DNA of 64,000 bases from Pavona decussata (taxonomy: Eukaryota), in contig CDRNST010000195.1 of the NCBI GenBank assembly GCA_977016875.1, positions 3,348,001 to 3,412,000 of the forward strand. Direction: 5' to 3'. Shown piece after piece: positions 37,691-58,856 of this stretch. The notes beneath the pieces were generated by a model that was not told the origin of the DNA, made no database searches, and saw only the letters and a program-made list of their open reading frames with translations. Every line of letters starts with the position of its first letter. Position 1 is the stretch's first letter. Both the position numbers and the translations under genes were made by a program.

Positions 37691-38552
37691 TTAATGAGTC
37701 ATGTGTCTAGGTCTGAATGGCCTTCACTTTTCCAGGTGGAAAAGAATGGCAGGACGGTGTTCATGTTTGGGCCAAATTGCACGATTCTTACTTGGAGTAT
37801 TGTTTAGTAGTATATGCATGTTTTACACGTTAAAGTCTTTCTTAACCCTAAAATGGCGCCGAGGTCTGGAACGTTTTTTCGGTGAGAGCACTTCGTACCC
37901 ATTGGACGAGAAACTCTGTTGCAGAGGGGATGAAGGCGCTTGGGTCATCCTTTGAACACTTTTGGTGTATCTTCATACTTTTCTAGCCTTGCTTTGCCAC
38001 GTGTCTGATCCTTATTTTTGGCCATGTAGACAAGCGGGGTCACCCGACATATGGGCAGATGCTGATTTTCCTCACAGTGACATTTGGCAATATGCCTGGC
38101 CAGTTGGTGCTTGCTCTCTCTTTGTCTATAGCTTGTGTATGGCACAAGTCTGCTTTAAGGTCATTGAAATAAATTTCTGTCAGTGTGCTGGATATTTGTT
38201 AAAAATGTAAAATCAACCTTCTAAACATCCTGGGGTAACTCGGGGTAACCGTATAAGGATGATTATTTAATAAAGTGATGTTTATTCCTGAAACTCCTGG
38301 ATATATAGCGGTTTTTTTTTCCTGCCTAATTCCAAGTTTTTGGGTGATTTCCCTACACTTTTGTTTGAGAGGTTGATAAGATTAATATGTAGAAGGAAGA
38401 GATGAATTGAGTCATACCAGTTGAAAGACAGCAATAAAATATACCAATGGTGACAGCGCCATGAAAAAATATGAAAAGAGAAATTTTTTTTGATTCTTAA
38501 AAAAAAAAACCCGATCTAAACCTGTTGGGGACTTTCCTGACCAGGAACCTAG

Positions 38553-38575
38553 TTAGGGTTAGGGTTAGGGTTAGG
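38553..38575 (+). repeat. Short telomeric repeat (TTAGGG)3TTAGG
   Basis: Seen directly. Preceded by TGACCAGGAACCTAG and followed by ATCCT. Confidence 0.95.
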
Positions 38576-38580
38576 ATCCT

Positions 38581-38718
38581 GGTTGATATCCCGACATTTT
38601 GGTTGATATTACGACACCATGGTTGATATCTTGACATTGTGGTTGATAAGTCGACACGTTTGGTTGATATTGTGACACTTTGTTGATATCCTGACAAATG
38701 TTGGTTGATAATTTGACA
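38581..38718 (+). repeat. 7-copy ~20-bp-period motif array, GGTTGATA-N4-GACA
   Basis: Copies at 38581, 38601, 38621, 38641, 38662, 38681 and 38703, with fixed motif and variable spacers. Confidence 0.9.
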
Positions 38719-39179
38719 GAAGAAAAGATGAAGTTAAATTTTTTCTTTAATGTTGGTTACAACATTGAAAATTGAGGTCTAGCCGTAAGTGGATTAAAGG
38801 GTAGGGTAGAAGACTTTTTTTTATTATAGTTTCCAGCTTTTTTTTTGATTGCAAATTAAAAAATTGATTTTTTTGCAAGGTAGAAAAACGATAATGGTGT
38901 GTCCAAAAATCAACCATAGTAAATGTTAAGAAATTTTAAAAATTTCGTTTTGGAATGTTTATAAAATGAATTGGAAGCAATGTAGGCGTATATTGAGCCT
39001 AATATTATTTTTGGCTCAAATTATAAATCCTCTTTTTATGCCTAATGTGCTTTCAATCACTTTTGAAACATTCCCAAAGGAAAAATTTCCTCTTCTTTGC
39101 AGTGGAGGCAGTGGTTTCCCGGTCCCCTCCTCAATTTCCATTGAGGGTATTACTTCTAAGACTTTTCAGTCATATAGAA

Positions 39180-39428
39180 GGGTTTCATCAAGTAACCAGT
39201 TTGACTCATTGTTGCCGGGTATGTATGGTAAGCTAAAACGTTTAGCCAATGTTTTGCCTTTAATCTTGTTAGACTGAGGCAAAAGCAATACAGTGTATTT
39301 GTGGGGCACTCCTCAGGGGTTGGTTACCCTAACTCGTGTTTGATCCCAGACAAATCACAGATATTGCCTTATCAGTCTCCCAGGGGTATCATGAAGTTAC
39401 CATCTTCACTCGTTGTTGCCAGGGTATG
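39180..39428 (-). ncRNA. Putative structured RNA / hairpin cluster 3' of YR gene A
   Basis: Three related hairpins (39180-39223, 39301-39347, 39381-39428) are conserved with element B (55408-55613) and show compensatory stem changes. Transcription is not demonstrated. Confidence 0.45.
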
Positions 39429-39571
39429 TTGTCGTGGTTCCCTGGTCCCCCCAAACCCTTTTTTATTTTTATTTTTATTTATTTTTATTTTTTTTTGATT
39501 TTATTTTTATTTATTTATTTTTTATTTTTATTTTTTTTTTGCTTTCTAGACTGCCATCACCTCAATCCTTA

Positions 39572-42500
39572 TCAACGAAACATATTCTTTACTTTGTTGT
39601 AGCACCTAGAAAAACCCTTTCTCTCTCTGATCTCATCCAATTTGGCATGGACAATAAAGATCCTCTCTATGTCTTTTTTGGATGGTCTTTCATCATACTT
39701 TGAGAAGACTTCACGAATAGCATCAACATCATCCTCGTCCCACTGCTCCCGAGTGGACCGTGAACTGTGCAAGGATTGTGCCTTGTGGTGTTCTTCAATC
39801 CAAGTGTATGTATCCTTCTGTGGTTCCTCGTTCTCCTGTTGCAGGGAGAGAAGAGTTTCTGGTGTCTGAACGGATTGGAGATATTTTATACGGTTGTATA
39901 CCTTCCTCACCATCTTGTTCTCATTTGCCAAGACAACCAGTCGCAAGCTCTCTTTCATGGTGTTTCTCACATCGGCAAAGGTGACTTTTGCGTTGGTGGT
40001 TATTTCGTCTGCAAACAGCAAATCGATGTCATCCATTTGGTCTTTGGACAACTGGGCACCATTGCTGTCTGCCTTCTGCGCTTCCTCCTCTTCTTCCTCT
40101 GTTTCCTCTTCGCCTTCTTCCTCTGTTTCCTCTTCGCCTTCTTCCTCTGTTTTCTCTTCGCCTTCTTCCTCTTCCTGGTTTTTTTCCTCTTGCTGCTCTT
40201 CGTCCTCCTCCTGTTCTTCTTCATATTGCTGGCCTTCATCCTGTTGTTTATCTTCCTCCTCAAGGCCAAGATTTTTTCTGATAATTTGATGGCTCTCATG
40301 GGCAACTCGTGTTCTCGCTGCGGTCATATAATATTTGTCAGCAGTTGATTCCTTGTGACACATATGCTTGTGCACCTTCCGTTTGTCAACGGGGTCTGCA
40401 TCATGCAGTGTTGAGGCAGTCATCCTTCTTAAGGCAGTGCTTGTTATTCTCTTGCCTTTGGCTTTCTTCCACCACTCTGCTATTCGTTTTCCAATGGTCC
40501 CGTCATTGAAAGCTTGTCCAGACGTAGTGATGAAGAGCTCATTGACGCCCTTTTGAACAAAGACAGAGCGCACATGTTTTACGTAGAGGACAATCTGATT
40601 GTGAAGGGTGTTGTTCATGGAAATGGGCGCAGGTCCTGCCGTAGAGGTTTTATGGCGGGCAACATACATCACAAAACCACCCTTTCCATCTGACTCAGCA
40701 GTCTCAAAATCTCGGAGTCTTGCCGCCTCCAAAGGACCAGGTCTTTGACCATTCTCGAGCCCCAACCTAACGATTAAATAGTCTCGGACGCAGACGAATT
40801 GACTGGTGCTGACCTTCATGTCCGCGCACTTAACAAGCAGCTGTTTGGCCTCCATGGCTGGTTTAAACGTTGTTACATTTTTGGCGTCCTCGGGTGGGAT
40901 GGCGTTTCTGGAGTCTTCTACGATTTTCTCCCACCTCTCAGTCTGATATAGGCGTGAGATGGACGATCGCCATGCCTTGACGTGTTGAACCATATGCGGC
41001 AACTTCTCTTTTAATTCTTTGCCAATCTTTGGGATTCCCCTTACACCAGTTTCATATGCATCTACAAGAAACTCAAAAAACTTTGCCAGCGAACAAAGAT
41101 AGGACTTTACCGTTCCAGGCCTCATGTTTTTTGAGTCCAGCATTGGTTGGGCCCAGTTTTTGCACACGGATATTCCTCCCTCTATAAAGAGGCAATCAAT
41201 TTCTTTTGATCCTGGGTCCAGGTGTTCGACGATCTTGCGTACATTCTGCGCATTGTGCACGGCATGTCGCTCTTTTAAATGCCCACCATTGAGACTTTGA
41301 AGGTGTTGGCAGAACATTAGGAGAAACTGATTCAACTCATCATTGGCATGGTTCTTCTTCTGATAGAAGCTTACCCAAATTTCATCTTCGTCCTCATCCT
41401 CTTCTTCTTCATAATCAGAATCGTCATGTTCTTGGACATCTTGGTCATCGGACTCATCTGGGGAATATTGTTCGTCTTTATCATGTTGTTTAGACTTTTG
41501 GGGAGTTGGCGGGATGACATCTTCGATTTCTGATGATTTTTCCTGAGGCATGAAAAAGTCTTCATCGCTGGTGTTAGTAGAGTCTTCAGAGTCCAGCTCT
41601 GCTGCCAGAAGCATCAGGCCCGATGACATTTTCTTTTTCTTAGGGGAAACCACTACGTCCTCCTCATAACCCAGATTTTGGGCTCTTCGTCTTTTAGCCT
41701 TTACTATGGACCTGTCCCACTTGAGCTCTTCCTTTTTCGCCTTGGTATTTGCGAGCCTTCTGCATTGCAAACTCGTACTGCTCTGACTGCCGGTCAAGAC
41801 GGTGAGTGCACTGGAGGTGTGTTGTTAGGTATTGCACAACTTTGTCACACATCGGGCAGATCTTTTTTTGTCGACCACGGTATCGCTTCACTGACCCATC
41901 CTCCACTGTCACCCTTTTCTTTCCCCTTTTCTTTTCCTCGTGCTTTGCCATCTCAACAAGCGCTTGTATTCTGGCAATGGGAAGCCGCTGGTTTTTGAGG
42001 CAGTGTTTTAGCTCGATGTGCCTTGCCAGACGCGTTTGTACGGTGTGGCAGACCGGGCATTCCAGCTTTCTGTCGCGCTTGCAAACATTCTACATCTTGG
42101 CCTTTCTTTGTTTCGCTAAACGTGCCGGTTTGGTCTTGGGTTTTGGGTGTTGTTCCATAGATGGCCCTTCTGCTTCAGGGGTTGGTGGACATGTTGAATC
42201 GGGACCTTCGTTAGGGTGTTGTTCGATGGATGGCCCTTCTGCTTCAGGGGTTGGTGCTTTAGATTTTGGCAGCTGATCGCGGATGATCTTCTCCACCTCA
42301 TCGACATCTTCTGAGGTTAATGGCAACAGTTTCTCGAGGTCTAGCACCTCCATATGCTCAAGATAATGCAATCTCTGGATTGCCGACATGTGTTCATCAC
42401 ACATATTTATCGTTGGCCAGAGGCCCACTTGTAAGGCTGCTTTGCCATAGAGTTGGGTGCAGTGGTAAACCTCCATCAATTGCAGCTTGCTACGTCGTTT

Positions 42501-42941
42501 GCCTTTAGTTTTCTTTGGTTTTCCTTTGGCACGCTCCATCCTTTGCATGATTGCCATAAGATTTTCAACAGTGGAAGCTGAGGTGGACTCTAAGGTTGAC
42601 GGTTGTTTGGTTGGCTCTGAGGTTTCCTCTGAGGTTGATGGTTGGTTGGTTGACTCTGAGGTTTCCTCTGAGGTTGACGGCTGCTTGGTTGGCTCTGAAG
42701 TTTCCTCTGACGTTGATGGTTTGTTGGTTGCCTCTGAGGTTGACAGTTGCTTGGTTGGCTCTGAAGTTTCCTCTGAGGTTGACGGTTGCTTGATTGGCTT
42801 TGAAGTTTCCTCTGAGGTTGACTCTGAGGTTTACTCTGAGGTTTCCTCTAAGGTTGACGGTTGGTTTTTGTTTGTAGGCGATGTTGATTCCTTTGACTGT
42901 GGTGTTTTCTTTTTCTGGTGTTTTCTCCGCCTTGGAGCCAT
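39572..42941 (-). pseudogene. Zinc-finger / tyrosine recombinase gene A; YR-containing 741-codon ORF open at 39572-41797, 5' part disrupted
   Basis: ATG at 42941 (MAPRRRKHQ), in-frame stops at ~42831 and 42090, frameshift ~41730. Fingers CPVC..LARHIELKH and CPMC..LTTHLQCTH. YR motifs ENGQRPG (R), ARHKT (K), TALRR (R), HMCH (H), DKYY (Y). Glu-rich linker and helical C-terminal repeats. Confidence 0.85.
42575..42865 (-). repeat. Coding 36-bp minisatellite (QPSTSEETSEPT-like)
   Basis: Repeated GGTTGGCTCTGA(A/G)GTTTCCTCTGAGGTTGAC units in frame with gene A's N-terminus. Confidence 0.85.
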
Positions 42942-43067
42942 CTCGGTAATATACTAAATATCTTTACTCGTATCTTGTATGTTGTATCTCGTATCTCTAT
43001 TGGTATGTAATGAAATGAAATCCCAAGCTATTGAAATTGCGCAAATAAGTGGAGCTTTCCCGAGGTT

Positions 43068-43102
43068 TTAGGGTTTTCTAACCCTAACCCTAAACCTAAC
43101 CC
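43068..43102 (-). repeat. Inverted telomeric tract with hairpin TTAGGGTT-TTCT-AACCCTAA, then CCCTAAACCTAACCC
   Basis: Seen directly, ~130 bp upstream of gene A's ATG. Confidence 0.85.
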
Positions 43103-43520
43103 GATCATTTTGATATCGTAGTACAATTAGTAAGAAATGGAATAACCTGCATGTCAAATTTCAAGCAAGGGGATTAAATCCTCGCTGAAATATTGCAGTT
43201 AAAAGTATGGCTTGTTTCCATTGCTGCCCCCCCCCCCCGGAAAAAGCCCCCCCGATCATTTTGATATCGTTGTACAATTTGTAACAAATGGAATAACCTG
43301 CATGTCAAATTTCAAGCAAGGGGGTAAAATCCTCGCTGAGATATCGCAGTTAAAAGTATGGCTTGTTTCCATTGCTGTCCCCCCCGGAAAAAGCCCCCCC
43401 GATCATTTTGATATCGTTGTACAATTGTCCACAGATGTAACAACCTGCATGTTAAATTTCAAGCAAGGGGATTAAATTGTCGCTGAGATATTACAGTTTA
43501 AAGTTTAGCCTCATTCCAAT
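43100..43520. repeat. Three ~150-bp tandem repeats upstream of gene A
   Basis: CCCGATCATTTTGATATCGT..ACCTGCATGTCAAATTTCAAGCAAGGGG units, with GATC at 43103, 43254 and 43401. Confidence 0.92.
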
Positions 43521-46500
43521 GAAAAGAAAGCGAGCAGCGGATTGGGAACGAAATATGCGTCTGGCATTTTGTGAAAATCTTTTATCGTTAATATCTCAAA
43601 GGGGATTTAACGGTTTGAAGCCCAATTTCGTATGCATGTTCTTTGTCTACCACTGGACATTTGTGCCAAAGTGCACGTCATTAGATTATCTCTTTGTAAC
43701 ATTTTCTGCTTGTTAAAGTTTTAGTTGTTTTCAGTTGTTTACTCATTTGCATATGCTTATCCTCACGTTACAAATGGTTGTTTTCATCCGCAATTGTGTT
43801 AAAAAGAATAACTAGTTCCCTCAACACTATTTTCCAAGGTCTCTTGCAGATAAACGTTACTGTTAGACTAATAGTATTGGGTTAAAGTAAACACTTGTAT
43901 ACAAGAAACATATAGAAAGACATAAATATTCATGAACTCATTTAAATATGCCAAATATGCAGCGAAAAACCGTTATATTCATAGTTAAGTGTGCTCAGAG
44001 TGAGCACTATGCCCTTAGCCACTTATTTCTATGGTTTGTTTGCCGCTGCATACTTTGCATGAGGCTTAAATTATAGACTTTTATAGAGAAAAAAAAAGCA
44101 TGACTTACCAAAGTTGAGGCTTGACTGGTCAATGGTTGATTTTCCGACACCTTCGCTTTTGTTTAATAATTTTTTTTTTCAAAATTGCCAGGTTAGCTAT
44201 CCTAACCATGTTTAGCAAAAACCTTAAGGTATTACCAACTGAGCTATTGCTTTATCAGGTCAATAGAATGTAATAATTAGTTAACCTCGCGGTATGAAGC
44301 ATTGGCTGATTTGTCGACATTTTCAGTGGACGCCATTTTAGAAATACAAAAAAACTGCTAGAAAAATCACAATGAAGTGGATGAAGACGAACAAGGTGTC
44401 GTTGGGTAGCCCTTAAAGATTGCCATCTAATGGAGGGGTCATGCGGTCTTCAAACATGTATTTAAGCGGTTGACCGCTGACCAAATTGTGAAAATTAACC
44501 TTGGAAGGTTACTGGAAAAGTGATTGTGCTTAACACAGCGATCTTTTCAACTTGGACAAATGTTTTCTATTTAATCAATACATGGGTAACAGATGCGTGG
44601 CTGACTTAAAAATGAAAGTCGTTGCAGCATGCTGCAACGAGATAATTGCCGGAAAGCTAAGGTCATTAAAAATTCAAAATGGCGGAAAAAGAAGAAGTTC
44701 AAATTCTTATATCTCCCTTTTGTTAGTGCGTTATAAGCCGATATTTGGCCAAAATAACGTAAACTAAACCTTTTTTAAAGGTGTTGTACTTTTAGCGGGC
44801 TTTAGGGATGTTAGGAACGTATTTAATCGATGTAAACATGTAAGAACTTGGAACTGTTAAAACATTACCATTTAGCAAGTTCTGCTTTCGTGTTGAGGTT
44901 TAAACAAAAAAGCAGGTTATGTAAACATCATTAAATGTGTTTGCTATTCTGGGGCTAAAACTGTTTTTAATTTATAAGTAATCCAAGTAAGTGACCATCG
45001 TTTGGTTGATTTTCCGACATTTTTGTGGTTTTTTGTTAATTTCTTTAAAATAATACCAGGTTGAGCATTGATAAGTTTACAGCCTCAGTTTCAATGTGAT
45101 TATCTTTCCTATGAAACTCATTTCAATGTCAACAGCAAAAACCAAGAAAAGATATTACGGCTGAGACCCATGGTTGATTTTCTGACAGCAAAATGAGAAA
45201 TTTTGGGGTTAAAAGGTTAAATTTGTGGTGAAGTTTTTCTTTTTAAAAGTCGGGATTTTTCATGTGTTTACACAGCAAGATGTTAACTGCTCAGGATGTT
45301 TTAATTGAGAAAACCCCTAAAATTGATGTTAAGCTAAATCTTTAGTGCAAAAAACGAAAAGTCACCTTTTGTCATTTTTTAAATTCAAGATTGATCTTAG
45401 TATTAGACCTGTGTAGTTTTATTCTTTTCGTGAACTTTTTTAACATATGATAGTTAAATGTGTTGGCTATAAGGTGACACAACCACCTTGAGTGAAAACA
45501 TTGTTGTTGGGGAGATATACTTCTAAAATGGCTATTTTAGCTCCTCACAACAAGAAAAAATGCCTATTCAGTTACCCTTAAAATTGGCCTTGTCCGTGTA
45601 GTATTAAAGTGACCAAACTTTGCGTCTGAAAAGTTGAGCTTTTTTGCTTTGGAGCTGTGTGTCATTTCTAGAACCTTAAGCTAAATTTTTAATCATTTTT
45701 TTATCAAGCAACAGGTTGTTATTGCATCAAAATGACAAAAACGTCATGAAAATCCAAGACGAAATTTCACAAAGAAGTCACTGTAGTTGAAATGTGGAAA
45801 AAGTACAAAACATTAAAAAGATGCAGAATTTGTAGAAAATAACATTTTCCTGTGTCTTGTTATAAAATTTCTTATATTTTTTACTCTTTGAAAGATGATG
45901 AAAAAAAAGGGTCATTTTGGTTGATTTTATGACAATTTGGTGACAAATGAATCTTTTTTGCCTAAAAAAGAGGTTACAAAATAAAAAGATGGCAGGGCAA
46001 AAATACAAATACTTTTCCTTACGCTGTCTTCTTCCTGGCAATGTGACGAAAAATTAAAGTAGTTTTATAATTGGTGAAAGTCATGGTTGATATCCTGACA
46101 GTCAAAAAAAACAATTTCTTGGAAAAGAAAGATTTTTAGAAAGAAAACGGTAAAAATAAATAGACATGTCTGGGCATTTTTGAATAGCGCCAAAAATCTA
46201 GTATCTGTGGAATTTTTTGTTTTTCATACACTCTTATAGTTAGGGAAATATATTCATTTAAGTTTTTTTTTCGTGTTTCAAAAGAATGAATGTGACTTTC
46301 TGAGTTTTGAGTCTTGTACAAGACATGCAGGAAGTTGGTAAAAGTTTCAAAATTCGAAAAATCGGTTTTTAAGAATGAGAGTGTATCCTAGGGTAATCTA
46401 CTGGTGTTGTTTAGCTATGTTCCAAGTCTCTAATTCGAAAAATTCTAATATTTAACCCTCTTTTTCCTCCATTTAGACTTTTCTGGTTGATTTTCTGACA

Positions 46501-46691
46501 ATTTTGCATGTCGAGATCAATAATTCAAAAACACGAGGAAATTTTTGTCGTTCACACCCCTTAATTAATAAAGGACATCATAATAGACATGTTAGCAAAG
46601 TTTCAACCTTAGGGAAAGCTGTGGGAATTTTTTACAATTTTTTCAAAAGTGAAGTCTAAACTGTCCCAAAGTGTGTTGACGAGGAACCTAA

Positions 46692-46861
46692 TTAGGGTTA
46701 GGGTTATAATCCTGTGGATTTGCCTACACGATTCGGGGCTTTGCCTACAGGTCTGGGATTTGCCTACGAGTTTCGTGGACTTGCCTACATTTTTCCGGGA
46801 CTTGCCTACTTGTAAGGGATTTGCCTACAGGGGTCATTTTTTCCATTCAGGTTTTGCCTAC
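46692..46861 (+). repeat. (TTAGGG)2TTA followed by a 7-copy GG(A/C/T)(T/C)TTGCCTAC array
   Basis: TTGCCTAC at 46720, 46741, 46760, 46781, 46802, 46821 and 46854. Preceded by TGACGAGGAACCTAA, with ATCCT between the telomeric tract and the array. Confidence 0.9.
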
Positions 46862-49166: not shown

Positions 49167-52100
49167 TAACTCGTGAATTGTTTGTAATAACTGTGTTCAC
49201 CGTATTTCATTTCCTCTCCCTTTCCCAACTAAAAGATGATTTCAAGCATAACTCGGTGTACTATGCTTGAAATCATCTTTTACTCAGACACGAGCACGAT
49301 TTTACATATTTTTCAATAGGCTCGCAGTAGGTTTTCTTCCTGGACAAAGAACCATTCGCTTCTAATCCAAGGTTTTCACAAATCACTCTAAGATCTACTA
49401 ACTTCAGAGAGTGAAGCTTGTTAGAGCTTACTAGCTCACATATGTTGTTGGAACCAACTACAATCGGATGGGTCGGCATTGCCATGTCATTCATCACAGT
49501 GGTTCTGAGTGTTTCATGAGCCACTTCAGATTGGATTGCAACAACGTCTTCTTCTGTTACATCCTCCTCTCTGATACCCCTTTGGCGCTGAACAGCTGTG
49601 AGTCTTGAAAACAAACTACTGATCTGTTGTGAACTCCTCCATTCCTCTGGCGTGAACACAAGGTAACCTTCTTCGTTTCTCACAACTTTCATTTCTTTTG
49701 CTAGCTGGACAGGGTCTGCTTTATATCCACTTCTCGCTCCATCATTAAACTTTCTCAGCAGAAATTCCTTTGACTTCTCTGTCATTCGTGAGGGTTTCTT
49801 GACAACTTTCAGGGTTCATCCCGGTTGTCTAACTTTACCACTTTCTCCAAAGCCAAGTTCAGATGTAGTACTTCTGCTTGGGCCTTGGAGATCAAGTGTA
49901 ACTCCCGTCACTCGGCTTGCCCATTGTTGATGTATCTTGTCAAACATTGACTCTGACTCCAGCTCTCGTCTATGTTTGCCTGTGTCCATGTGCTTGTCTA
50001 CCTCTGACTGCGATCTAAAAGTCAGAATGCACCCCGTCTCCCTACATGGAAAAATGTCAACCTGATTTCTAACAGTTTCTCCCAGTGTGCCACGTTCCTT
50101 GATTGATGGGCCAAAAGGTTGGATGATTTTTAAACCAGTGTCCCCTTGTGAACTGGTCTGAAGATCAGCGTAGGGTATTAGGCGTCCTGGACCAATATTG
50201 TAGGCCTTCCATACTCTCATGCCAGTGTCGTCGAAATGGAAGTTGTTTAGAATACTGATCCCCGGAATCTTGCTCTCCTTGTTTGCTTCCTTTGAGGTGT
50301 CAACTTCTACCACTGCTGCACGACATCCCTTTAGTCCACCATGTGACTCTAATGCCTCCTTCATTTCCTGAGCAGTGGTAACATTATGTTTCTTGTTTAC
50401 CCAGCGTCTGATATGGGCCTTCATAGGTGCTGCTTTTCGATCGCATATGTCCTTTCCAGCTTGCGGATCGGAAAAATCGTACCGAATTGGACGGACGCCA
50501 GTTGTCACCCCTAGTTCTTGTAAGCTGACAAGGAGTGGTCCATTATGGTAACAACCAGCATTATCAGAACGAAAAAAAGCTTTGTTAACACTGGGATATT
50601 CAATCTTGATAGTTTGTAGCAAGTTCTCGATATCGGACAAAACGGCGAAACTGTTCTGTGTGCAACTATTGAAAAGGTGAACAAAGCATTCCACTTCAAA
50701 CTTGTTACCCTCCGGTCCTATCCTACCCTGGCTAGTGATGACTGCACTGATGTGCCAACTTCTTCCTCGTTTGCCAAAGAAGTCACTCATTTGTTCGCGA
50801 TACTGCATTGGAAGAAACTTCATAGCCCAATCCATTATTATTAGGCAAGATTCACTGTCAAGTTTATTGAGCACATCTTGTTTTGCTTCTTCTTGGTTGC
50901 AAGACCGTAGGAAATGAGCCTTCCACGCCCTGATGTCGTCCAAACTCTCTGCAAACTCATATTGTGATCTTGTTTTCTGTTCTTCCGGTACCTGCAGCAC
51001 GTCATCCAGCATTTTGCCAACGTCCTCTAAGACTTTCTCAAGCGCTTCACATCTTTCACACTGGTATTGATGTTCGTGATCGCATTCACCACTAAACTCG
51101 GAAATGGCTTCGTCACTTAGAGCGTGAACAGTACAATGATCACTGCATTGCTCCTTTTTGCCAACGTGCGTCTTGTAGTCTGTTTTCAAATATCTTTTGC
51201 CATCTTTAAGTAACATTTGAGTGGAAGCTGTACTAATACCATGTTCCGCTAGACTTTCGACAATAGCTGATATATTATCAAAAGCTTCTGTTCCCTTTGG
51301 TGTGACGTTGTCAAGTCCATGCAAAGACTTTTGCATAGACGCCTCTATCATCCTGTACAGGGAGCGCTCGCTTGCTGGAAGAAAGCCCTCCTCTCTACAA
51401 TACTCCATGTATTGGCTTATTATTCGAGAAGGAATAAGTGTTCTGATTACTGCAGGGATAATTATTCTTTCGCCGGAATCGAGCTTCATGGTTTTAGTGC
51501 CGAAGGCCACATCTTGTACAAACTCTGGCCTTGAAATGAAGTTGATAAAGTGGTCGACTTTGACAGGGTCAATTTTGGTGCGGTATATGGGACTCTCGAG
51601 AGGTGGCTGTCCTTTACCGGCTACTGTTGTGTGTTGACGGGCTTGATCTATTCTCCATTTGGACAAACCTGGAACTATATCTTGCAGCTCGCTTTGTGTG
51701 AAGTCGTTCGCAAAGAGTGAGAGAATCTGGCGCTTTGTCTGCCAGGAGTCAGCTTGATTATAAGCCTTTATTAATACTTCTACGATCCCTGTAGATGAAT
51801 CAAAGCGCTTGCGCTTAGATGTATTCTCCAATAGTGGCTCCGTCTGTAATGCCTTCCACACAAGCTCCTCTTGCCCTGGTGCTATAACGGAGAGAGAGGC
51901 AGTAAAGGTCTCCTTAACCTTGCGTACGTAGTAGCGCTGCTGCGTGTCAGAAATATCATTCTAATCAGTATTCAGTGTCGACCGCACAGGGCTGTACCGT
52001 CCATCTGAGATATCGACTGCTTCATTTAACTTTTGCCTCTTTCGATTTTGCTCCTCTATCTCATCGATCCAAATGCTAACTTCCTCTTCAGGAATAGAAC

Positions 52101-53116: not shown

Positions 53117-55407
53117 GGGAAAGGCTAACAGTTCGGTCGGGGATGGGAAAAAGAGAGATCCTGGGAACGAAAGTTGCTGTTGTGTCTGCGTATCCTGTGT
53201 TTGTCGCTCCTGTCGTTTTCCGCAACTCAGGGCAGGTCTATTAAAATACCAAAATTTATCTTAGGATCACATCAATCTGGCCGCTCCTTTTTAGTCTTTC
53301 AGTTGGTACTCTTTGTTACTGATCGATCCCATTTATTTCAGGTGTCTGACCCTATCAACATGGGTTGAATCAATTAGTGGAAAAATACTAAGTGAAAAAC
53401 GGGAGCTTAGCATAACGTGGATCCCACAGTGGTAGTGGTTATTCTGGGCTTCTGTAAATGCCATTTTTAACAGGTTTCGCAGGTTCCACAGATTCCGGCG
53501 TTCCACTATTCCATTCTGCTGTGCAATTCTAGAAATAAATAATTTCCTTTAAAACATGCCGATAACCCACTATACTATTGGACCTACTATTAAACTCTCT
53601 TTTTCCAGTCCGCTTTAAAGTATTCAAGACCTTACCTGACCCAATAGGAACTACTTTGCCATGTAAGTCATAGATTTCCATAGACATAGTAGCAGTAACT
53701 TGGCGTGGATTGGCTAGCTTCTTTTGTGGACCCTCGTGAGAAGGATAAGCACACTTATTGGTTTTGCGGCCAACCCAATCTGTTGTGAGTGAATTTCTGT
53801 GCTTTGGACAGACAGTCATCGCGGCCTTCTGTTCAGGAGTAACACGGAAGTAGCCAGCACGATTTAGAATGAGGTCATCTTCGCTAACAACACTTCGACC
53901 GCTAGCGCCGATGGTTTTCAGTAGAGGTTTGACATCTCTTGTACACGCTGCTAATGGTATAATAGTATTTCCTATACCGACTTGGTCACAAGGAGAGTCC
54001 TCAGAATGGAAAGAACAGCTCACTAAAATACTCATGTTTTCGAAAGCATTCGACTACTTTGTTTACGTGCTGTTCAGTGAAAACACTGGCTCAAATTACA
54101 TGACGTGACAGAACGACAACCGGGAAATTGAAGTATCGCTACCAAATTTACATGTATGTTCGAAGTGCCGTGCTTAGTAAAATGGAAAAAATAAAAAAAA
54201 ACAAAACAAAATGGTAAAACGAGTTTTGATAACTACCGTTTTGAGCTTCCACTTTGTAACTGGCGACCTTTCTTGACTCTTTAAAATTTTAAGTTATTTG
54301 AGCACGTAACGCAATAACAGAGGTGACTGTGATCAGTACGAAATCAATTAGGTTAACTTAGTTTATTTTAGCAAATTTATAACGAGAATAAAAATGGCCA
54401 GATTTTCAACAAGCTGTTTGGATTTTCTAAGCAAAACTACAACAACTGGTTGTAAATTTCAATTTGTCATGTTTAGCGTTTAATGCAGAAATCATCGCAT
54501 GCGAAACTCGATCAAATGTAATTTTAACATTTCACGGTAAACATCGCCGATAACATCGCACGTGAAAACTCAAACGTAATTAGATATCGCATAACTTGCT
54601 GTAGAAAACAGCAACGACACATCAGATCAGACTGGTACAAAGAACATATTTATGGTTAAAACGCAAACCTGCAGACAAAATTGTAATTATTCGCTCAGTC
54701 GGTAAAATAAAAATGGCGGGAAAATGTATTCTGATTATCCTGATTTAGGCCGACTGAAATGCCCAATTGTGCGAAAGGATTTGGAGGTCCCAATCTAACT
54801 TTTGCTAAACATTAAACATGGATGGCTAAACTGTGCAAACACCGCTTTTCGTTAAAATTCTATCCACGCAGATGCTAGAAAATGTTTTTTGAAAAGAGCT
54901 TAAAATTTTCGAATCCGCCAAAAGCCACACCAGACGAAAATTTGCACATTAACCGAAGACATAAAATATTTCCTAAATCATTCATCTTGTACATGTGTTT
55001 TGATTGAATGTCAAATATTTTATATAAATCGTAAGAACGCTAAAAAGCGGTAAGACACAGGTGAAATAACTTACGCAAGTTACCCTAAATCTGAAGCTAT
55101 TTTCTTATGCAAATTAGCCAGAAACAAGGGGGTGGTCAAAATCGCATGAAAATAAGTCAGTTTTTTTTGAAAGGGAATATTTTTTAATCTTATCCGAAAG
55201 GTAATCTGTGGTAGGAATTTGAAAGGAATCGGCCGACCTTGAACCGTGGGCCCTGCCCGGTTCTCTCTGACAATGACACTTAAACATTATTTTTTAATGC
55301 ACTTTATTCAGCTTTTTTCTGGTTTCCTGGTCCCCCCCTTGTAGTTTGGTGAGAAACAACAAGAGTATTATCCTGAGACTGAGAAAGCAAGGACACCAAG
55401 ACTCTTC

Positions 55408-55613
55408 GTGGGGCACTCCCCAGGGGTTGGGTACCCTAGCTCATGTTAGATCCCGAACGAAGTTTCATAGGTGCCTTTTCACAGCCATTCAGGGGGTATC
55501 ATCGGGTAACCAACCCGACTCATTGTTGCCAGGATAAACATATTTCAACAAAAGTGAACAGCCTGGTAAAGCAGTGAATATCATCGAGTAACCAACACAA
55601 CTCATTGTAACGC
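55408..55613 (-). ncRNA. Putative structured RNA / hairpin cluster 3' of YR gene B
   Basis: Hairpins at 55408-55454, 55490-55535 and 55574-55613 are homologous to those in element A. Confidence 0.45.
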
Positions 55614-55731: not shown

Positions 55732-58700
55732 CTATCTCTTCTTGAAAATGTTTTTTACCTTGTCATAACATCTTAAAGGAATTTCTTGTCATGACTTCTT
55801 TCAAAATTGGGCAACTTTCAAACTTCTCCTTAATATCTGCCTTCTTTGGACAAGTGTCAAAATCTGAAAAAGCTTCCTCTATCAATGTAGTGTCCTGCTC
55901 TGACCAGGCAATTCTTGTGGAGCTCTTTGCTGTTCCACTGCTACAGCTTTTCTGGACCCATAGTTGGGTGCGAGAGGTATCCTTCTCTTCCGGAATCTCT
56001 TCGATATTGGAGGGAAACTTTTTTCTCTGAAGATGCTTGACCCTGAAGTAAACTTTCTTTACCATCTCTTCATCGTTAGTAAAACCGACAAGGTTTAGGC
56101 TCTTGCTCATCACGTTCCTGGTTTGTTGCAGCGAGAGAGAGGCATTGGTGTTTATATAGTGCGCAAAAAGGAGGTCGATGTCATCAGACTCTTCTTCGGT
56201 AAACTTAGGAGTTTTTGGACTGTCCTTTGTTGGGGTTTGGTTGCTTTTATTGATGTCTGCTAACTCGATGTTGGCTGCCAGAACGCTGTGACCCTTCACA
56301 GCCATGTCACCCAGGGATTGCAGCATGTAGTATGTCTCAGCGGTGCGGCCAGAGTGGCACATAAGCCTATGTGCACTGCGTTTGGAGACGTCATCAGTTT
56401 TGTGGAGTTGCGCGGCATGCATTTTCCTTAGCCGGGTGCTTGACACATTTGTCTTGCCAGTTGCTTTTCGCCACCAGGCAATGATGCATTTCCCGATTGT
56501 ACCGGGCTGGAAATCATTTCCTTCTTTTGTTACAAATATGCCTTCAACATCTTCACGCGCAAAGAAAGGCCTCACGTTTTTGATGTACACTTCGAGGTTG
56601 CTTTTCAAATTAGCAGACATGGTTAGTGGAGCCGGCCCCGCTTTGCTTCGTTTGTGGCGGCTGACATACATGACGTACTTCCCATCTCTATCCTCAATTC
56701 TCTCAAAGTCGCGCACCCTCGCAGTTTCCAGTGGTCCAGGCCGTTGACCGTTTTCCAAGCTGATTCTGGCGATGATAAAATCTCTTATCACAAGGAACTC
56801 CTTATTTGATGGCTCTCTTGTCTGGCATTCCAAAAGAAGATGCAACGCTCTTTTTGCAGGCTCGGAGTTTACCATGTCGTTGGTGTCACTGGGGTTTACT
56901 GCATCAACTCTATCTTCGAGAAGCTGTTCCTAACGCTCATGTGAATACAGCTGATTCACGGACGAGCCCATGGCTATAAAGCGCGGAATAATCTTCGTGA
57001 TCTTGGTAAGGGTGGGCTTGTCAATTGTTGGAATGCTTTTGACAGAATGCTCGCTATAATCGGCAATAAATTCAAGGAATTTAATAAGTGACGTTAGAGA
57101 AGCCCTGATGGTGCCTGGTCGTGAAGCCTTCTTGTCTAGAAGGGGCTTGGCGCAATGCTTCCAAACCTTTAAGCCACCATCATCAGTGATGCAGGCCAAT
57201 GTTTCATCCTCCTTGTCAATGTTGTCGTGGATGCGGCGTACGTTGTGCGTGTGGAAGATCGCATCGCGCTCTTTCTTGCACCCCTTCACCTTCTGAATCA
57301 GCTACTGCCTCGCCATGGTCACTTTTGTCGTCACTTTCTGACGGGCCAGTTGCTTGAGGTCTTGGCAAAGGTCTGGACATAAATGATGCTCCCGCTTTTG
57401 AGGGGCTTGGTGCGACGATAACCATTCCTCCATCGTCGTAACTCTCGTCTGATGAATCGCTGGAGAGCAACTCTTTAGAAAGGAGGACGAGAGGACTTGG
57501 ACGTTCGGTTTGCTTTGCTGGAGGTTCATAGTCATCGTCACTGGAGGAGATATCGAACGATTTCCGTTTCCGTGATGTGGAAGGACTACCGGGATGCTGT
57601 GTGAGTTTCTTCTTTTGAATGAGTGCTCGGTCCCACTGCAGTTCGGAAGACTTGCCGCTATAACGACGTGCCATAAGCACGAGCGACAAATATCTGTCGG
57701 TTGTTCGGTCTACCTTGTGCACTCGCTGGAGGTGTTTGTTGAGGTACAAAACCACCGAATCACACAAGGGACAGATCTCCTTGAAGCGTTGGTACTCCTT
57801 GATTCCAGCCTTGGTAGTTTTTTTGTCTTTTCCTCCTCTTACTTTGTTTCCTTTTCTGGCCATCTCCGCTAGTGCTTTCACTCTGACGGGTGGTATCTTT
57901 TCGTTGTTCTTGACGTGGACCAAGCGCAGATGCCGTGGGAGGTTACAGACCACTTTTTGACAGAGAGGGCAACTTCTGGGGGTGTTGTGTTTGCGTTTAT
58001 CTTCACCGTTTTTGTTCTTCTTTTTCTCGCCAGGAATGGCCTTTCTGATTTTCATCTTGACTTGTGTGCTTGTGGTAGTGGTTCCACTTGGACCTGCTAC
58101 TGGAACAACCTCGTCAGCCTTGTTACTACCAGCTTGGCCACTGTTGTTGTCACAAGGAATGTTCCTTCTGGTTTGTTTATTTCCTTGTGTTTCATTATTT
58201 GCTGTTCCACTGGGATCTGCGACTGAGACATCTTTGTCAGCCTGGTTACTACCAACTTGCCCACTGTCATCCTCAATCCTCTGAGCATCTTGCATGCTGT
58301 CATCCTCAACTCTCTGAGCATCTTGCATGCTGTCATCCTCAACCCTCTGAGCATCTTGCATGCTGTCATCCTCAACCCTCTGAGCATCTTTTATACTGTC
58401 ATCCTCAACCCTCTGAGCATCTTCCATGCTGTCATCCTCAACCCTCTGAGCATCTTCCATGCTGTCGTCCTCAACCCTCTGAGCATCTTCAATACTGTCA
58501 TCCCTGAACAGGGTAGAGTTCGATTCCAGCTCGTGTAGCAGTGCTAGGGCCGTTTCAGCGATGTCATCTTTGGAGACTTCTAGCATCTCTAGACTGTGAT
58601 TGTGAAATTTCTTGCAAAGGACATTGAGGTAAGACAGGGCAGTGGAGGCTGTCAACTCTAGTGTTCCGAGGCCGAGGCTCTTTGCAGCCACAGAAATTAA

Positions 58701-58856
58701 ACTCAATCGATAGTGTTCAGCCTGGAGACCACCCTTTGACAGGTTCGGTAACACGGAGAAAGTCGCTGTTTTGTCCTCCAGATCTATTTCAGAAGGGTCC
58801 TCTTCATCGTTAAGCACTTTTCGCAGGGCATCCTGTAGTTTCTTTCAGCGTTCCAT
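55732..58856 (-). pseudogene. Zinc-finger / tyrosine recombinase gene B (homolog of gene A), disrupted
   Basis: ATG at 58856 (MER*KKLQ). Fingers CPLC..LPRHLRLVH and CPLC..LNKHLQRVH. Deletion or frameshift ~57290, stop at 56930 where A has Trp. YR motifs ENGQRPG, SRHKR, TRLRK, LMCH, TYY. A terminal frameshift restores RCYDKVKNIF (A: RCYNKVKNMF). Confidence 0.85.
58263..58501 (-). repeat. Coding 33-bp minisatellite (VEDDSMQDAQR x7)
   Basis: Repeated CTGTCATCCTCAACCCTCTGAGCATCTT(G/C)CATG. Confidence 0.93.

Follow-up and report, generated by a model that had tools for sequence, protein, structure and literature searches.

What do the short palindromes that follow two tyrosine recombinase (YR) genes of Pavona decussata amount to: separate hairpins or parts of one folded structure, and does such a structure work as RNA or as DNA? 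The genes lie in the window, i.e., the whole stretch of 64,000 nucleotides that was analysed and to which positions refer unless another copy is named.

39572-41797, minus strand: YR gene A, 741 aa (Pfam Phage_integrase at E=2e-5, below the curated cut-off)
39453-39560, minus strand: A-rich low-complexity tract between the stop codon of A and the structured module described below (sequence reading)
55763-56875, minus strand: YR gene B, a 370-aa ORF (weak Pfam match to Phage_integrase)

The proteins of A and B are 37% identical over 418 aa. An ORF of 533 aa upstream of B (57216-58817) is probably the N-terminal part of gene B; in a protein comparison, A matches this ORF N-terminally, albeit weakly. 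A PDB search with a single YR sequence gave no match, and a profile of 11 YR homologues matched XerA alone (5hxy, E=0.008), over the R..H..Y catalytic end. Pfam searches of the window ORFs and of homologues of 1000-1250 aa returned the Phage_integrase or SAM-like domain only, with no reverse transcriptase or other enzyme, and DUF3504 had no match at E<=0.01 among the window ORFs.

Six hairpins with common flanks had been described in the initial annotation. All six are present on the minus (gene-sense) strand, 3' of both YR stop codons, and each carries the flanks as described, ..ACAAYGAG 5' of the stem and KGA 3' of it.

39392-39408 and 39188-39204, minus strand: type-1 hairpins of A (sequence check)
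39313-39332, minus strand: type-2 hairpin of A (sequence check)
39301-39350, minus strand: type-2 hairpin domain of A, with 5' flank UCUGGGAUCAAACACGAG, the hairpin at 39313-39332 and 3' flank GGAGUGCCCCAC
55584-55600 and 55502-55518, minus strand: type-1 hairpins of B (sequence check)
55420-55439, minus strand: type-2 hairpin of B (sequence check)

The type-2 region is the sole similarity between elements A and B at the DNA level (39298-39347 vs. 55405-55454, 88%). The U-A to C-G change reported for its stem is genuine and arises independently again in the copy L133. Wobble pairs fall on the sense (minus) strand, as had been claimed: the type-2 stem, of which 27 related copies were collected, shows 45 G.U and 3 A.C combinations.

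The six hairpins are pieces of one conserved folded module of ~100-215 nt. According to MFE folds and covariation, this module consists of two nested three-way junctions and a pseudoknot. On the sense strand it begins with P1 (CCUGG/CCAGG, 5 bp), followed by the 10-nt strand J12 (CAACAAUGAG), the type-1 hairpin P2, the strand J23 (UGAUA) and P3 (CCCC/GGGG). The second junction lies inside P3 and is formed by P4, which is of variable length, the strand YUAAUA and P5. On the 3' side of P3, a single A leads into P1', after which comes the tail RAACCA. P2 has the form U-NNNN, loop N-UGGU-NN, NNNN-A, i.e., a variable stem of 5 bp with an invariant closing G.U, flanked by GA..GA; the consensus of J23 is UGA(U/A/C)A, and P3 begins with C-G. 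The positions in A and B are listed below; the covariance model R1, for which scores are given, covers P1, P2 and P3.

39112-39220, minus strand: canonical minimal module of A (MFE fold; R1 94.1 bits, E=8e-23), made up of the eight parts that follow
39205-39219, minus strand: P1a and J12
39188-39204, minus strand: P2 (type-1 hairpin b)
39179-39187, minus strand: J23 and P3a
39153-39178, minus strand: P4
39148-39152, minus strand: J45
39129-39147, minus strand: P5
39113-39128, minus strand: P3b, the single A, P1b and AAACC
39112-39115, minus strand: pseudoknot partner ACCA (loop-tail pairing)
39383-39452, minus strand: circularly permuted three-way junction of A, with type-1 hairpin a at 39392-39408
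55321-55534, minus strand: canonical long module of B (MFE fold; R1 match on the 5' part, 53.7 bits), made up of the four parts that follow
55502-55518, minus strand: P2 (type-1 hairpin)
55420-55439 and 55408-55419, minus strand: P4 extension, i.e., the type-2 hairpin and GGAGUGCCCCAC, respectively
55336-55365, minus strand: P5
55321-55335, minus strand: tail
55584-55600, minus strand: degenerate type-1 hairpin of B without P1 or P3, flanked by ACAAUGAG and UGAU

MFE folding gave an identical architecture in nine diverged families. In long forms (B, L003, L009, L021), P4 bears the type-2 hairpin with its conserved flanks, and in minimal forms (39112-39220 of the window, L008, L029, L041) it is a plain hairpin; the form in L041 measures ~100 nt. 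Autonomous elements carry a permuted P1/P2/P3 junction or a degenerate hairpin, then a type-2 domain, then the canonical module. Accordingly arranged, element A has its type-2 domain between two copies of the P1/P2/P3 junction, of which the upstream one is permuted (R1 match at 39317-39421, 39.7 bits). The permuted order is a G-run, A, CCAGG, GAACC(AC), a loop, CCUGG, J12, P2, UGAUA and CCCC, so that a loop closes P1 while P3 stays open. L007, L021, L050, L069 and L071 show this arrangement as well, and the permuted P1 of L071 covaries (CUAGG/CCUAG) independently of its canonical copy downstream. B-type elements have one complete junction only, preceded by a degenerate hairpin that lacks P1 and P3; this hairpin of B is identical in L003 and L055 and nearly so in L008 and L031.

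Stems had been said to vary while their pairing is kept, and the alignments bear this out. Two alignments fitted to the model were used, with 53 and 50 distinct sequences, many of them related, so that the figures are to be read as support and not as probabilities. Standard pairs fill 95.5% and 97.2% of the cells, respectively, compared with 86-88% in shuffles and at most 60% in controls with slid partners. The covariation score was 0.331 vs. 0.164 and 0.149 in shuffles, none of the 500 shuffles reaching it, and 10 of 15 and 8 of 15 pairs have changed on both sides in the two alignments. P2 is paired in 99% of cells, with stems that include CGG/CCG, CGA/UCG, CAA/UUG, GAA/UUC, GGG/CCC, UGG/CCA, CCA/UGG and CAG/CUG. 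P1 occurs as CCUGG/CCAGG, CCCGG/CCGGG, CCCGG/CUGGG, CCCAG/CUGGG and CCUAG/CUAGG, with G.U intermediates. In all 50 aligned sequences P2 is closed by G.U and has GA before and after it. Next to these freely varying stems stand ~35 near-invariant nucleotides that are unpaired or pair-specific. The variable parts are thus the paired stems, with no variable unpaired segments, and the suggestion of a guide RNA was dropped. P1 covariation could partly stem from co-evolving inverted protein-binding sites.

The fold belongs to one strand. Variable positions of P1-P3 contain 24 G.U and 6 A.C combinations, P3 often terminates in U.G, and the sense fold is more stable than the antisense fold in 16 of 19 distinct modules. 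This bias does not tell RNA from single-stranded DNA (ssDNA) because G.T wobbles and sheared G.A pairs are found in folded ssDNA as well.

Positions 2-5 of the type-1 loop pair with the tail ACCA directly 3' of P1', forming a pseudoknot. Three independent compensations are the chief support: L173 combines UAGC with GCUA, two pairs being changed on both sides, and both L070 and the permuted copy of L021 combine a U-to-C with an A-to-G change. The remaining changes in loop or tail are wobble-compatible. Across 31 distinct loop/tail combinations 87% of positions pair, which none of 5000 shuffles reached, although the shuffled mean of 84% leaves a small margin because both partners are highly conserved; we therefore give this margin less weight than the compensations. 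The pseudoknot also accounts for the conservation of the single-stranded tail. A different partner had been proposed for the type-1 loop, namely the loop of the type-2 hairpin. The two are indeed complementary in sequence (UGGUUA vs. UAACCA), but they do not covary as kissing loops would. At least six independent changes in type-1 loops are uncompensated (L017, L031, L053, L058, L070, L117), the type-2 loop variants of B, L021 and L193 are unmatched by type-1 loops, and N-UGGU-NN is equally conserved in at least eight families without a type-2 hairpin within 450 nt. As a speculation, the type-2 loop, which shares the word AACCA, might mimic or compete with the tail.

Recurrence of the hairpin pattern is far above chance. 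Within the window's own 602-Mb assembly, BLAST with the A region returned 40 matches, the pattern of flanks plus hairpin matched 84 times (8 for a reversed control), the 3' tail motif matched 57 times (2 for a reversed control), and R1 recovered 103 copies at E<=0.01 from 150 scored candidates. Within this genome, the YR genes that precede the module are 28-55% identical to A or B. Elsewhere, a TARA metagenome scaffold and four more assemblies have it 3' of YR homologues (37-76% identity), and metagenome contigs scanned for the pattern yielded another 19 diverged copies. The orientation of the module is always that of the ORF, 100-300 nt past the stop and behind an A-rich tract. The module also occurs in repeats that lack a YR gene, i.e., a 10-kb element (the L009 family) and two families of ~1 kb or more, and no YR homology was found near these YR-less carrier families; YR-less L017 starts after a (CCCTAA)2 tract. 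In three metagenome contigs (L145, L152, L164) it lies ~100 nt past the stop of a gag-like ORF that ends in a CCHC zinc knuckle (RCYNCGKMGHIRRQC...FGK and stop), and the module is therefore not restricted to YR-only elements. A copy of the L047 family (L062:380-400) is broken off inside J12 with an A-run before it, which could reflect 5' truncation or a deletion.

The carriers are bounded by telomeric repeats, as is seen at both ends of element A.

38553-38576, minus strand: (CCCTAA)3.5 tract that closes element A at its 3' end and is followed at once by the next element, which opens with CTAGGTTCCTGGTC
46692-46703, minus strand: (CCCTAA)2 tract that separates element B (3' end) from element A (5' end); A starts with TTAGGTTCCTCGTC

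Telomeric tracts at both ends thus place element A at ~38577-46691. The YR elements form a head-to-tail chain that is split by short (CCCTAA)n tracts on the sense strand. L003, L069 and L071 likewise end in (CCCTAA)n, 0.85-1.4 kb past the module; overall, the module is internal and elements run ~0.2-1.4 kb beyond it to (CCCTAA)n. Their termini are telomeric-repeat junctions with imperfect inverted repeats. New elements start with TTAGG/CTAGG-TTCCTSGTC, and a near-palindrome with CCTAA on one side and TTAGG on the other marks the junction. A third telomeric tract, inverted (43082-43099, plus strand), is internal to element A and located 1.3 kb 5' of the ORF. With a YR, no reverse transcriptase and telomeric ends, the carriers thus count as Crypton-like elements of the YR-only kind, with telomeric repeats as their target or site of attachment.

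Motif arrays are found just 5' of the 3' telomeric tract: ATATCAACCA occurs seven times in A (38580-38720), GTAGGCAAATCC in B (46704-46780), GTAGGGAAATC in L003 (2880-2916), and ATCAACAA types in L069 (6380-6425) and L071 (6440-6484). The TCAACMA core of these terminal arrays resembles J12 (CAACAA) and the loop of the permuted P1. In addition, the 5' terminus of the elements (TTCCTGGTCAAC..) is similar to the head (UCCUGGCAACAA) and to the tail (GACCAGGAAACC) of the module. The 5' terminus of the element that follows A, GGTTCCTGGTC (38536-38552), is the exact reverse complement of the module tail GACCAGGAACC minus one A, and in other elements CAACA stands after a GGTTCCTGGTC-type terminus, like the module head. 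Because of the likeness between terminus and tail, termini and module may share a binding protein or a history.

Two further features of the window were noted alongside the chain. The 8.6-kb stretch from the module of B to the 3' end of B holds a 681-aa ORF (49816-51861, minus strand), probably a nested transposon; it has no Pfam family, and a protein atlas groups it with cnidarian and mollusc proteins that are hypothetical or of the C2H2 kind. A tandem array with a period of ~3.7 kb occupies positions 1-34000, downstream of the YR chain; its minus strand bears a 237-aa ORF eight times, for which Pfam gives no match.

Among described elements, the carriers share with CryptonV and other Cryptons a YR as the only recognisable enzyme, a cnidarian host and target-specific insertion into a simple repeat, which in the present case is (CCCTAA)n. 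CryptonV is reported as target-specific, and microsatellite-specific in cnidarians (Repbase Reports 2012, as cited in PMC8869645), and going by its description in PMC8869645 it is the nearest described group to the carriers. The DUF3504 signal of CryptonA (PMC3212892) is absent in the carriers. At the 5' boundary of the YR-less copies L083, L089 and L091 there is a (TTG)n microsatellite, and in L044 (400-450) (CAA)n continues directly into J12; these boundaries recall the microsatellite-specific insertion reported for CryptonV. The sense strand of Penelope-like elements of the Athena and Coprina clades likewise ends in reverse-complement telomeric repeats (PMC8557442), whereas the carriers described here encode a YR and no reverse transcriptase and their module does not adjoin the telomeric tract. 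Full-text literature searches returned nothing specific, either on RNA structure or ribozymes in YR transposons or on YR elements that target telomeres, and the words 'hairpin' and 'stem-loop' are absent from the Crypton paper PMC3212892.

The module was also compared with known RNAs. No Rfam family matches it: a search of release 15 gave no gathering-level match in the window and nothing on the module at E<=10, and ten further module copies gave nothing consistent. The GA/GA flanks of the hairpins had been likened to the cores of K-turns and SECIS elements. The resemblance to a K-turn is plausible insofar as GA..GA is present around P2 in the form 5'-..AAU-GA-G..stem..U-GA-3', with possible tandem sheared G.A pairs beside the G.U. 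It fails in that there is no C-stem opposite a 3-nt bulge; in the MFE fold the strands past the GAs enter P1 and P3. The flank motif of P2 would be a K-junction-like variant at most. We take the 5' flank AAUGAG with the G.U to resemble the K-turn of the U4 snRNA 5' stem-loop, and the loop-tail arrangement is presumably akin to that of the SAM-I riboswitch, where a K-turn enables a pseudoknot and the loop reaches a strand near the closing helix. A SECIS-like core was discarded: the module shares an AUGA..GA quartet-like flank in the 3' region past an ORF, but its upper helix, the P2 stem, has 6 bp including the G.U instead of ~9-12, its loop N-UGGU-NN is without the AAR motif, and it is embedded in a three-way junction. 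Both SECIS and a simple K-turn were set aside, as their defining geometry is absent.

Evidence on transcription is as follows. Among runs recorded as RNA, none contains the stretch. The contigs of four runs guessed to be RNA (Logan) contain one exact 221-nt piece (39214-39434), for which neither ends nor strand are given, and contigs of runs guessed to be RNA also contain pieces of two other module families. Within 200 nt 3' of the module, AAUAAA or AUUAAA is absent in most copies and present only in B and L008. A-rich tracts like that of A also occur in L050, L055, L057, L069, L071 and L072, and in some elements such a tract contains AAUAAA 5' of the module, so that the mRNA may stop short of the module.

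Taken together, a structured element, as suspected in the initial annotation, is supported in the sense of a strand-specific, covarying, folded single strand tied to YR genes. This sense-strand fold is kept under strong selection, with fixed position and orientation past the ORF. On balance we consider it somewhat probable that the hairpins belong to a structured module not described before, and that this module folds on the sense strand, most likely as RNA, in the part of the transcript immediately past the recombinase ORF. The module would act as RNA, in cis on the transcript of its element. GA/GA and the G.U at the base of P2 may kink the helix in the manner of a K-turn, bringing the loop to the tail beside P1, and kink and pseudoknot together would lock a compact fold. 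Most likely, the module would define the 3' end of an RNA, or protect it, where a poly(A) signal is lacking, either through self-cleavage or as the nucleus of a protein complex. We propose a role at the 3' end because poly(A) signals are mostly absent downstream, an A-rich tract lies upstream and the module is spread among unrelated repeats. Besides its YR-only, Crypton-like carriers, which are arranged head to tail, the module has spread to YR-less repeats.

A narrower reading, which we regard as rather unlikely, is that the module represents a new class of small self-cleaving ribozyme that cuts element transcripts, e.g., between GGGGA and CC. Such a cut would give the recombinase mRNA an A-rich end encoded in the genome and would free the RNA between the permuted and the canonical copy. 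The likeness to the hammerhead is one of connectivity: the module likewise proceeds from stem I through core, stem II hairpin, core and stem III, one nucleotide and back to stem I, with GA..GA flanking the middle hairpin, and its junction exists in two circular permutations, open at P1 or at P3, which compares with hammerhead types I and III. Also in keeping with catalysis are the near-invariant nucleotides beside freely varying stems, the pseudoknot, the lack of a downstream poly(A) signal in most copies and the occurrence of the module as a discrete unit in unrelated repeats, including past the CCHC gag-like ORF, as is the case for ribozymes in retroelements. A precedent exists in telomere-attached Penelope-like elements, which combine reverse-complement telomeric repeats with hammerheads (PMC8557442). 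However, the hammerhead core CUGANGA/GAAA with its A15.1-U16.1 pair is absent, the third position of GA-N-A varies, and the module differs further in its junction strands of 10, 5 and 1 nt, its extra P3/P4/P5 junction and its loop-tail pseudoknot. Hammerhead models found no match at E<=10 in the window or at E<=5 in ten further copies, and no Rfam ribozyme family matches at E<=5-10. B-type elements moreover possess one complete junction only, and module and telomeric tract are 0.5-1.4 kb apart rather than adjoining. More generally, the module may be a self-cleaving class, or another autonomous catalytic or exonuclease-blocking fold, that combines hammerhead-like connectivity with a core of its own, is borne by recombinase transposons of cnidarians that target telomere repeats, and frees the RNA between the two copies, possibly as a circle; we rate this version as similarly unlikely.

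Less likely still is a folded ssDNA site for the tyrosine recombinase, comparable with integron attC or CTX-phage attP, in which P1 would recreate a duplex recombinase-binding element and the variable P4/P5 would correspond to a variable terminal structure. Like attC, the module is a YR-associated, strand-specific fold with conserved structure and variable length. It is strictly associated with YR genes and kept in YR-less derivatives, e.g., in L017 after (CCCTAA)2, and the similarities of its head and tail to element 5' termini and of J12 to the TCAACMA arrays would fit as well. Yet attC forms the cassette boundary and crossover site, whereas the module is internal, with highly conserved junction sequences and a pseudoknot, and the natural crossover is at the telomeric-repeat junctions of the termini. 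In the available sequence, a telomeric flank is missing from most YR-less carrier families, and a pseudoknot of 4 bp is typically a feature of RNA folds, as is a kink like that of a K-turn; we know of no YR element in eukaryotes that uses a single strand. That the palindromes are duplex DNA binding sites for the recombinase or an accessory protein, without any folding, is very improbable. Type-1 hairpins do have the format of a YR core site, with two short inverted arms and a 7-bp spacer, and co-changing arms could mirror co-evolution with a protein. But the arms are only 5 bp long and vary freely among close families while the asymmetric flanks are invariant, and duplex binding leaves the variable P4/P5 and the loop-tail covariation unexplained; the tolerance of G.U on one strand only and the long-range pairs of P1 and P3 led us to reject this candidate.

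Structured RNAs borne by transposons, such as hammerhead and HDV-like ribozymes and the 3' stem-loops of LINEs, have been rich sources of RNA biology. To our knowledge, none has been reported from elements with a recombinase only (Crypton-like). The compact fold described here persists among recombinases as far apart as ~30% identity and occurs ~100 times in one genome; its minimal form of 100 nt is short enough for direct biochemistry. Should it prove catalytic, the module would constitute a new class of ribozyme; should it bind protein or block exonucleases, it would reveal how elements associated with telomere repeats, which are poorly understood, handle their transcripts.

A second, different structured module was observed directly 3' of the stop of more distant YR genes (L033:3455-3800, L072:5250-5330) and upstream in L133, L148 and L200. 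It has the form GCCCGGAACAG .. GACC .. CCCUCU-CUACCGGGG-AGAGGG .. GGUC, with hairpin stems that covary, and its hairpin loop CCGGG is complementary to an upstream CCCGG in a pseudoknot-like arrangement.
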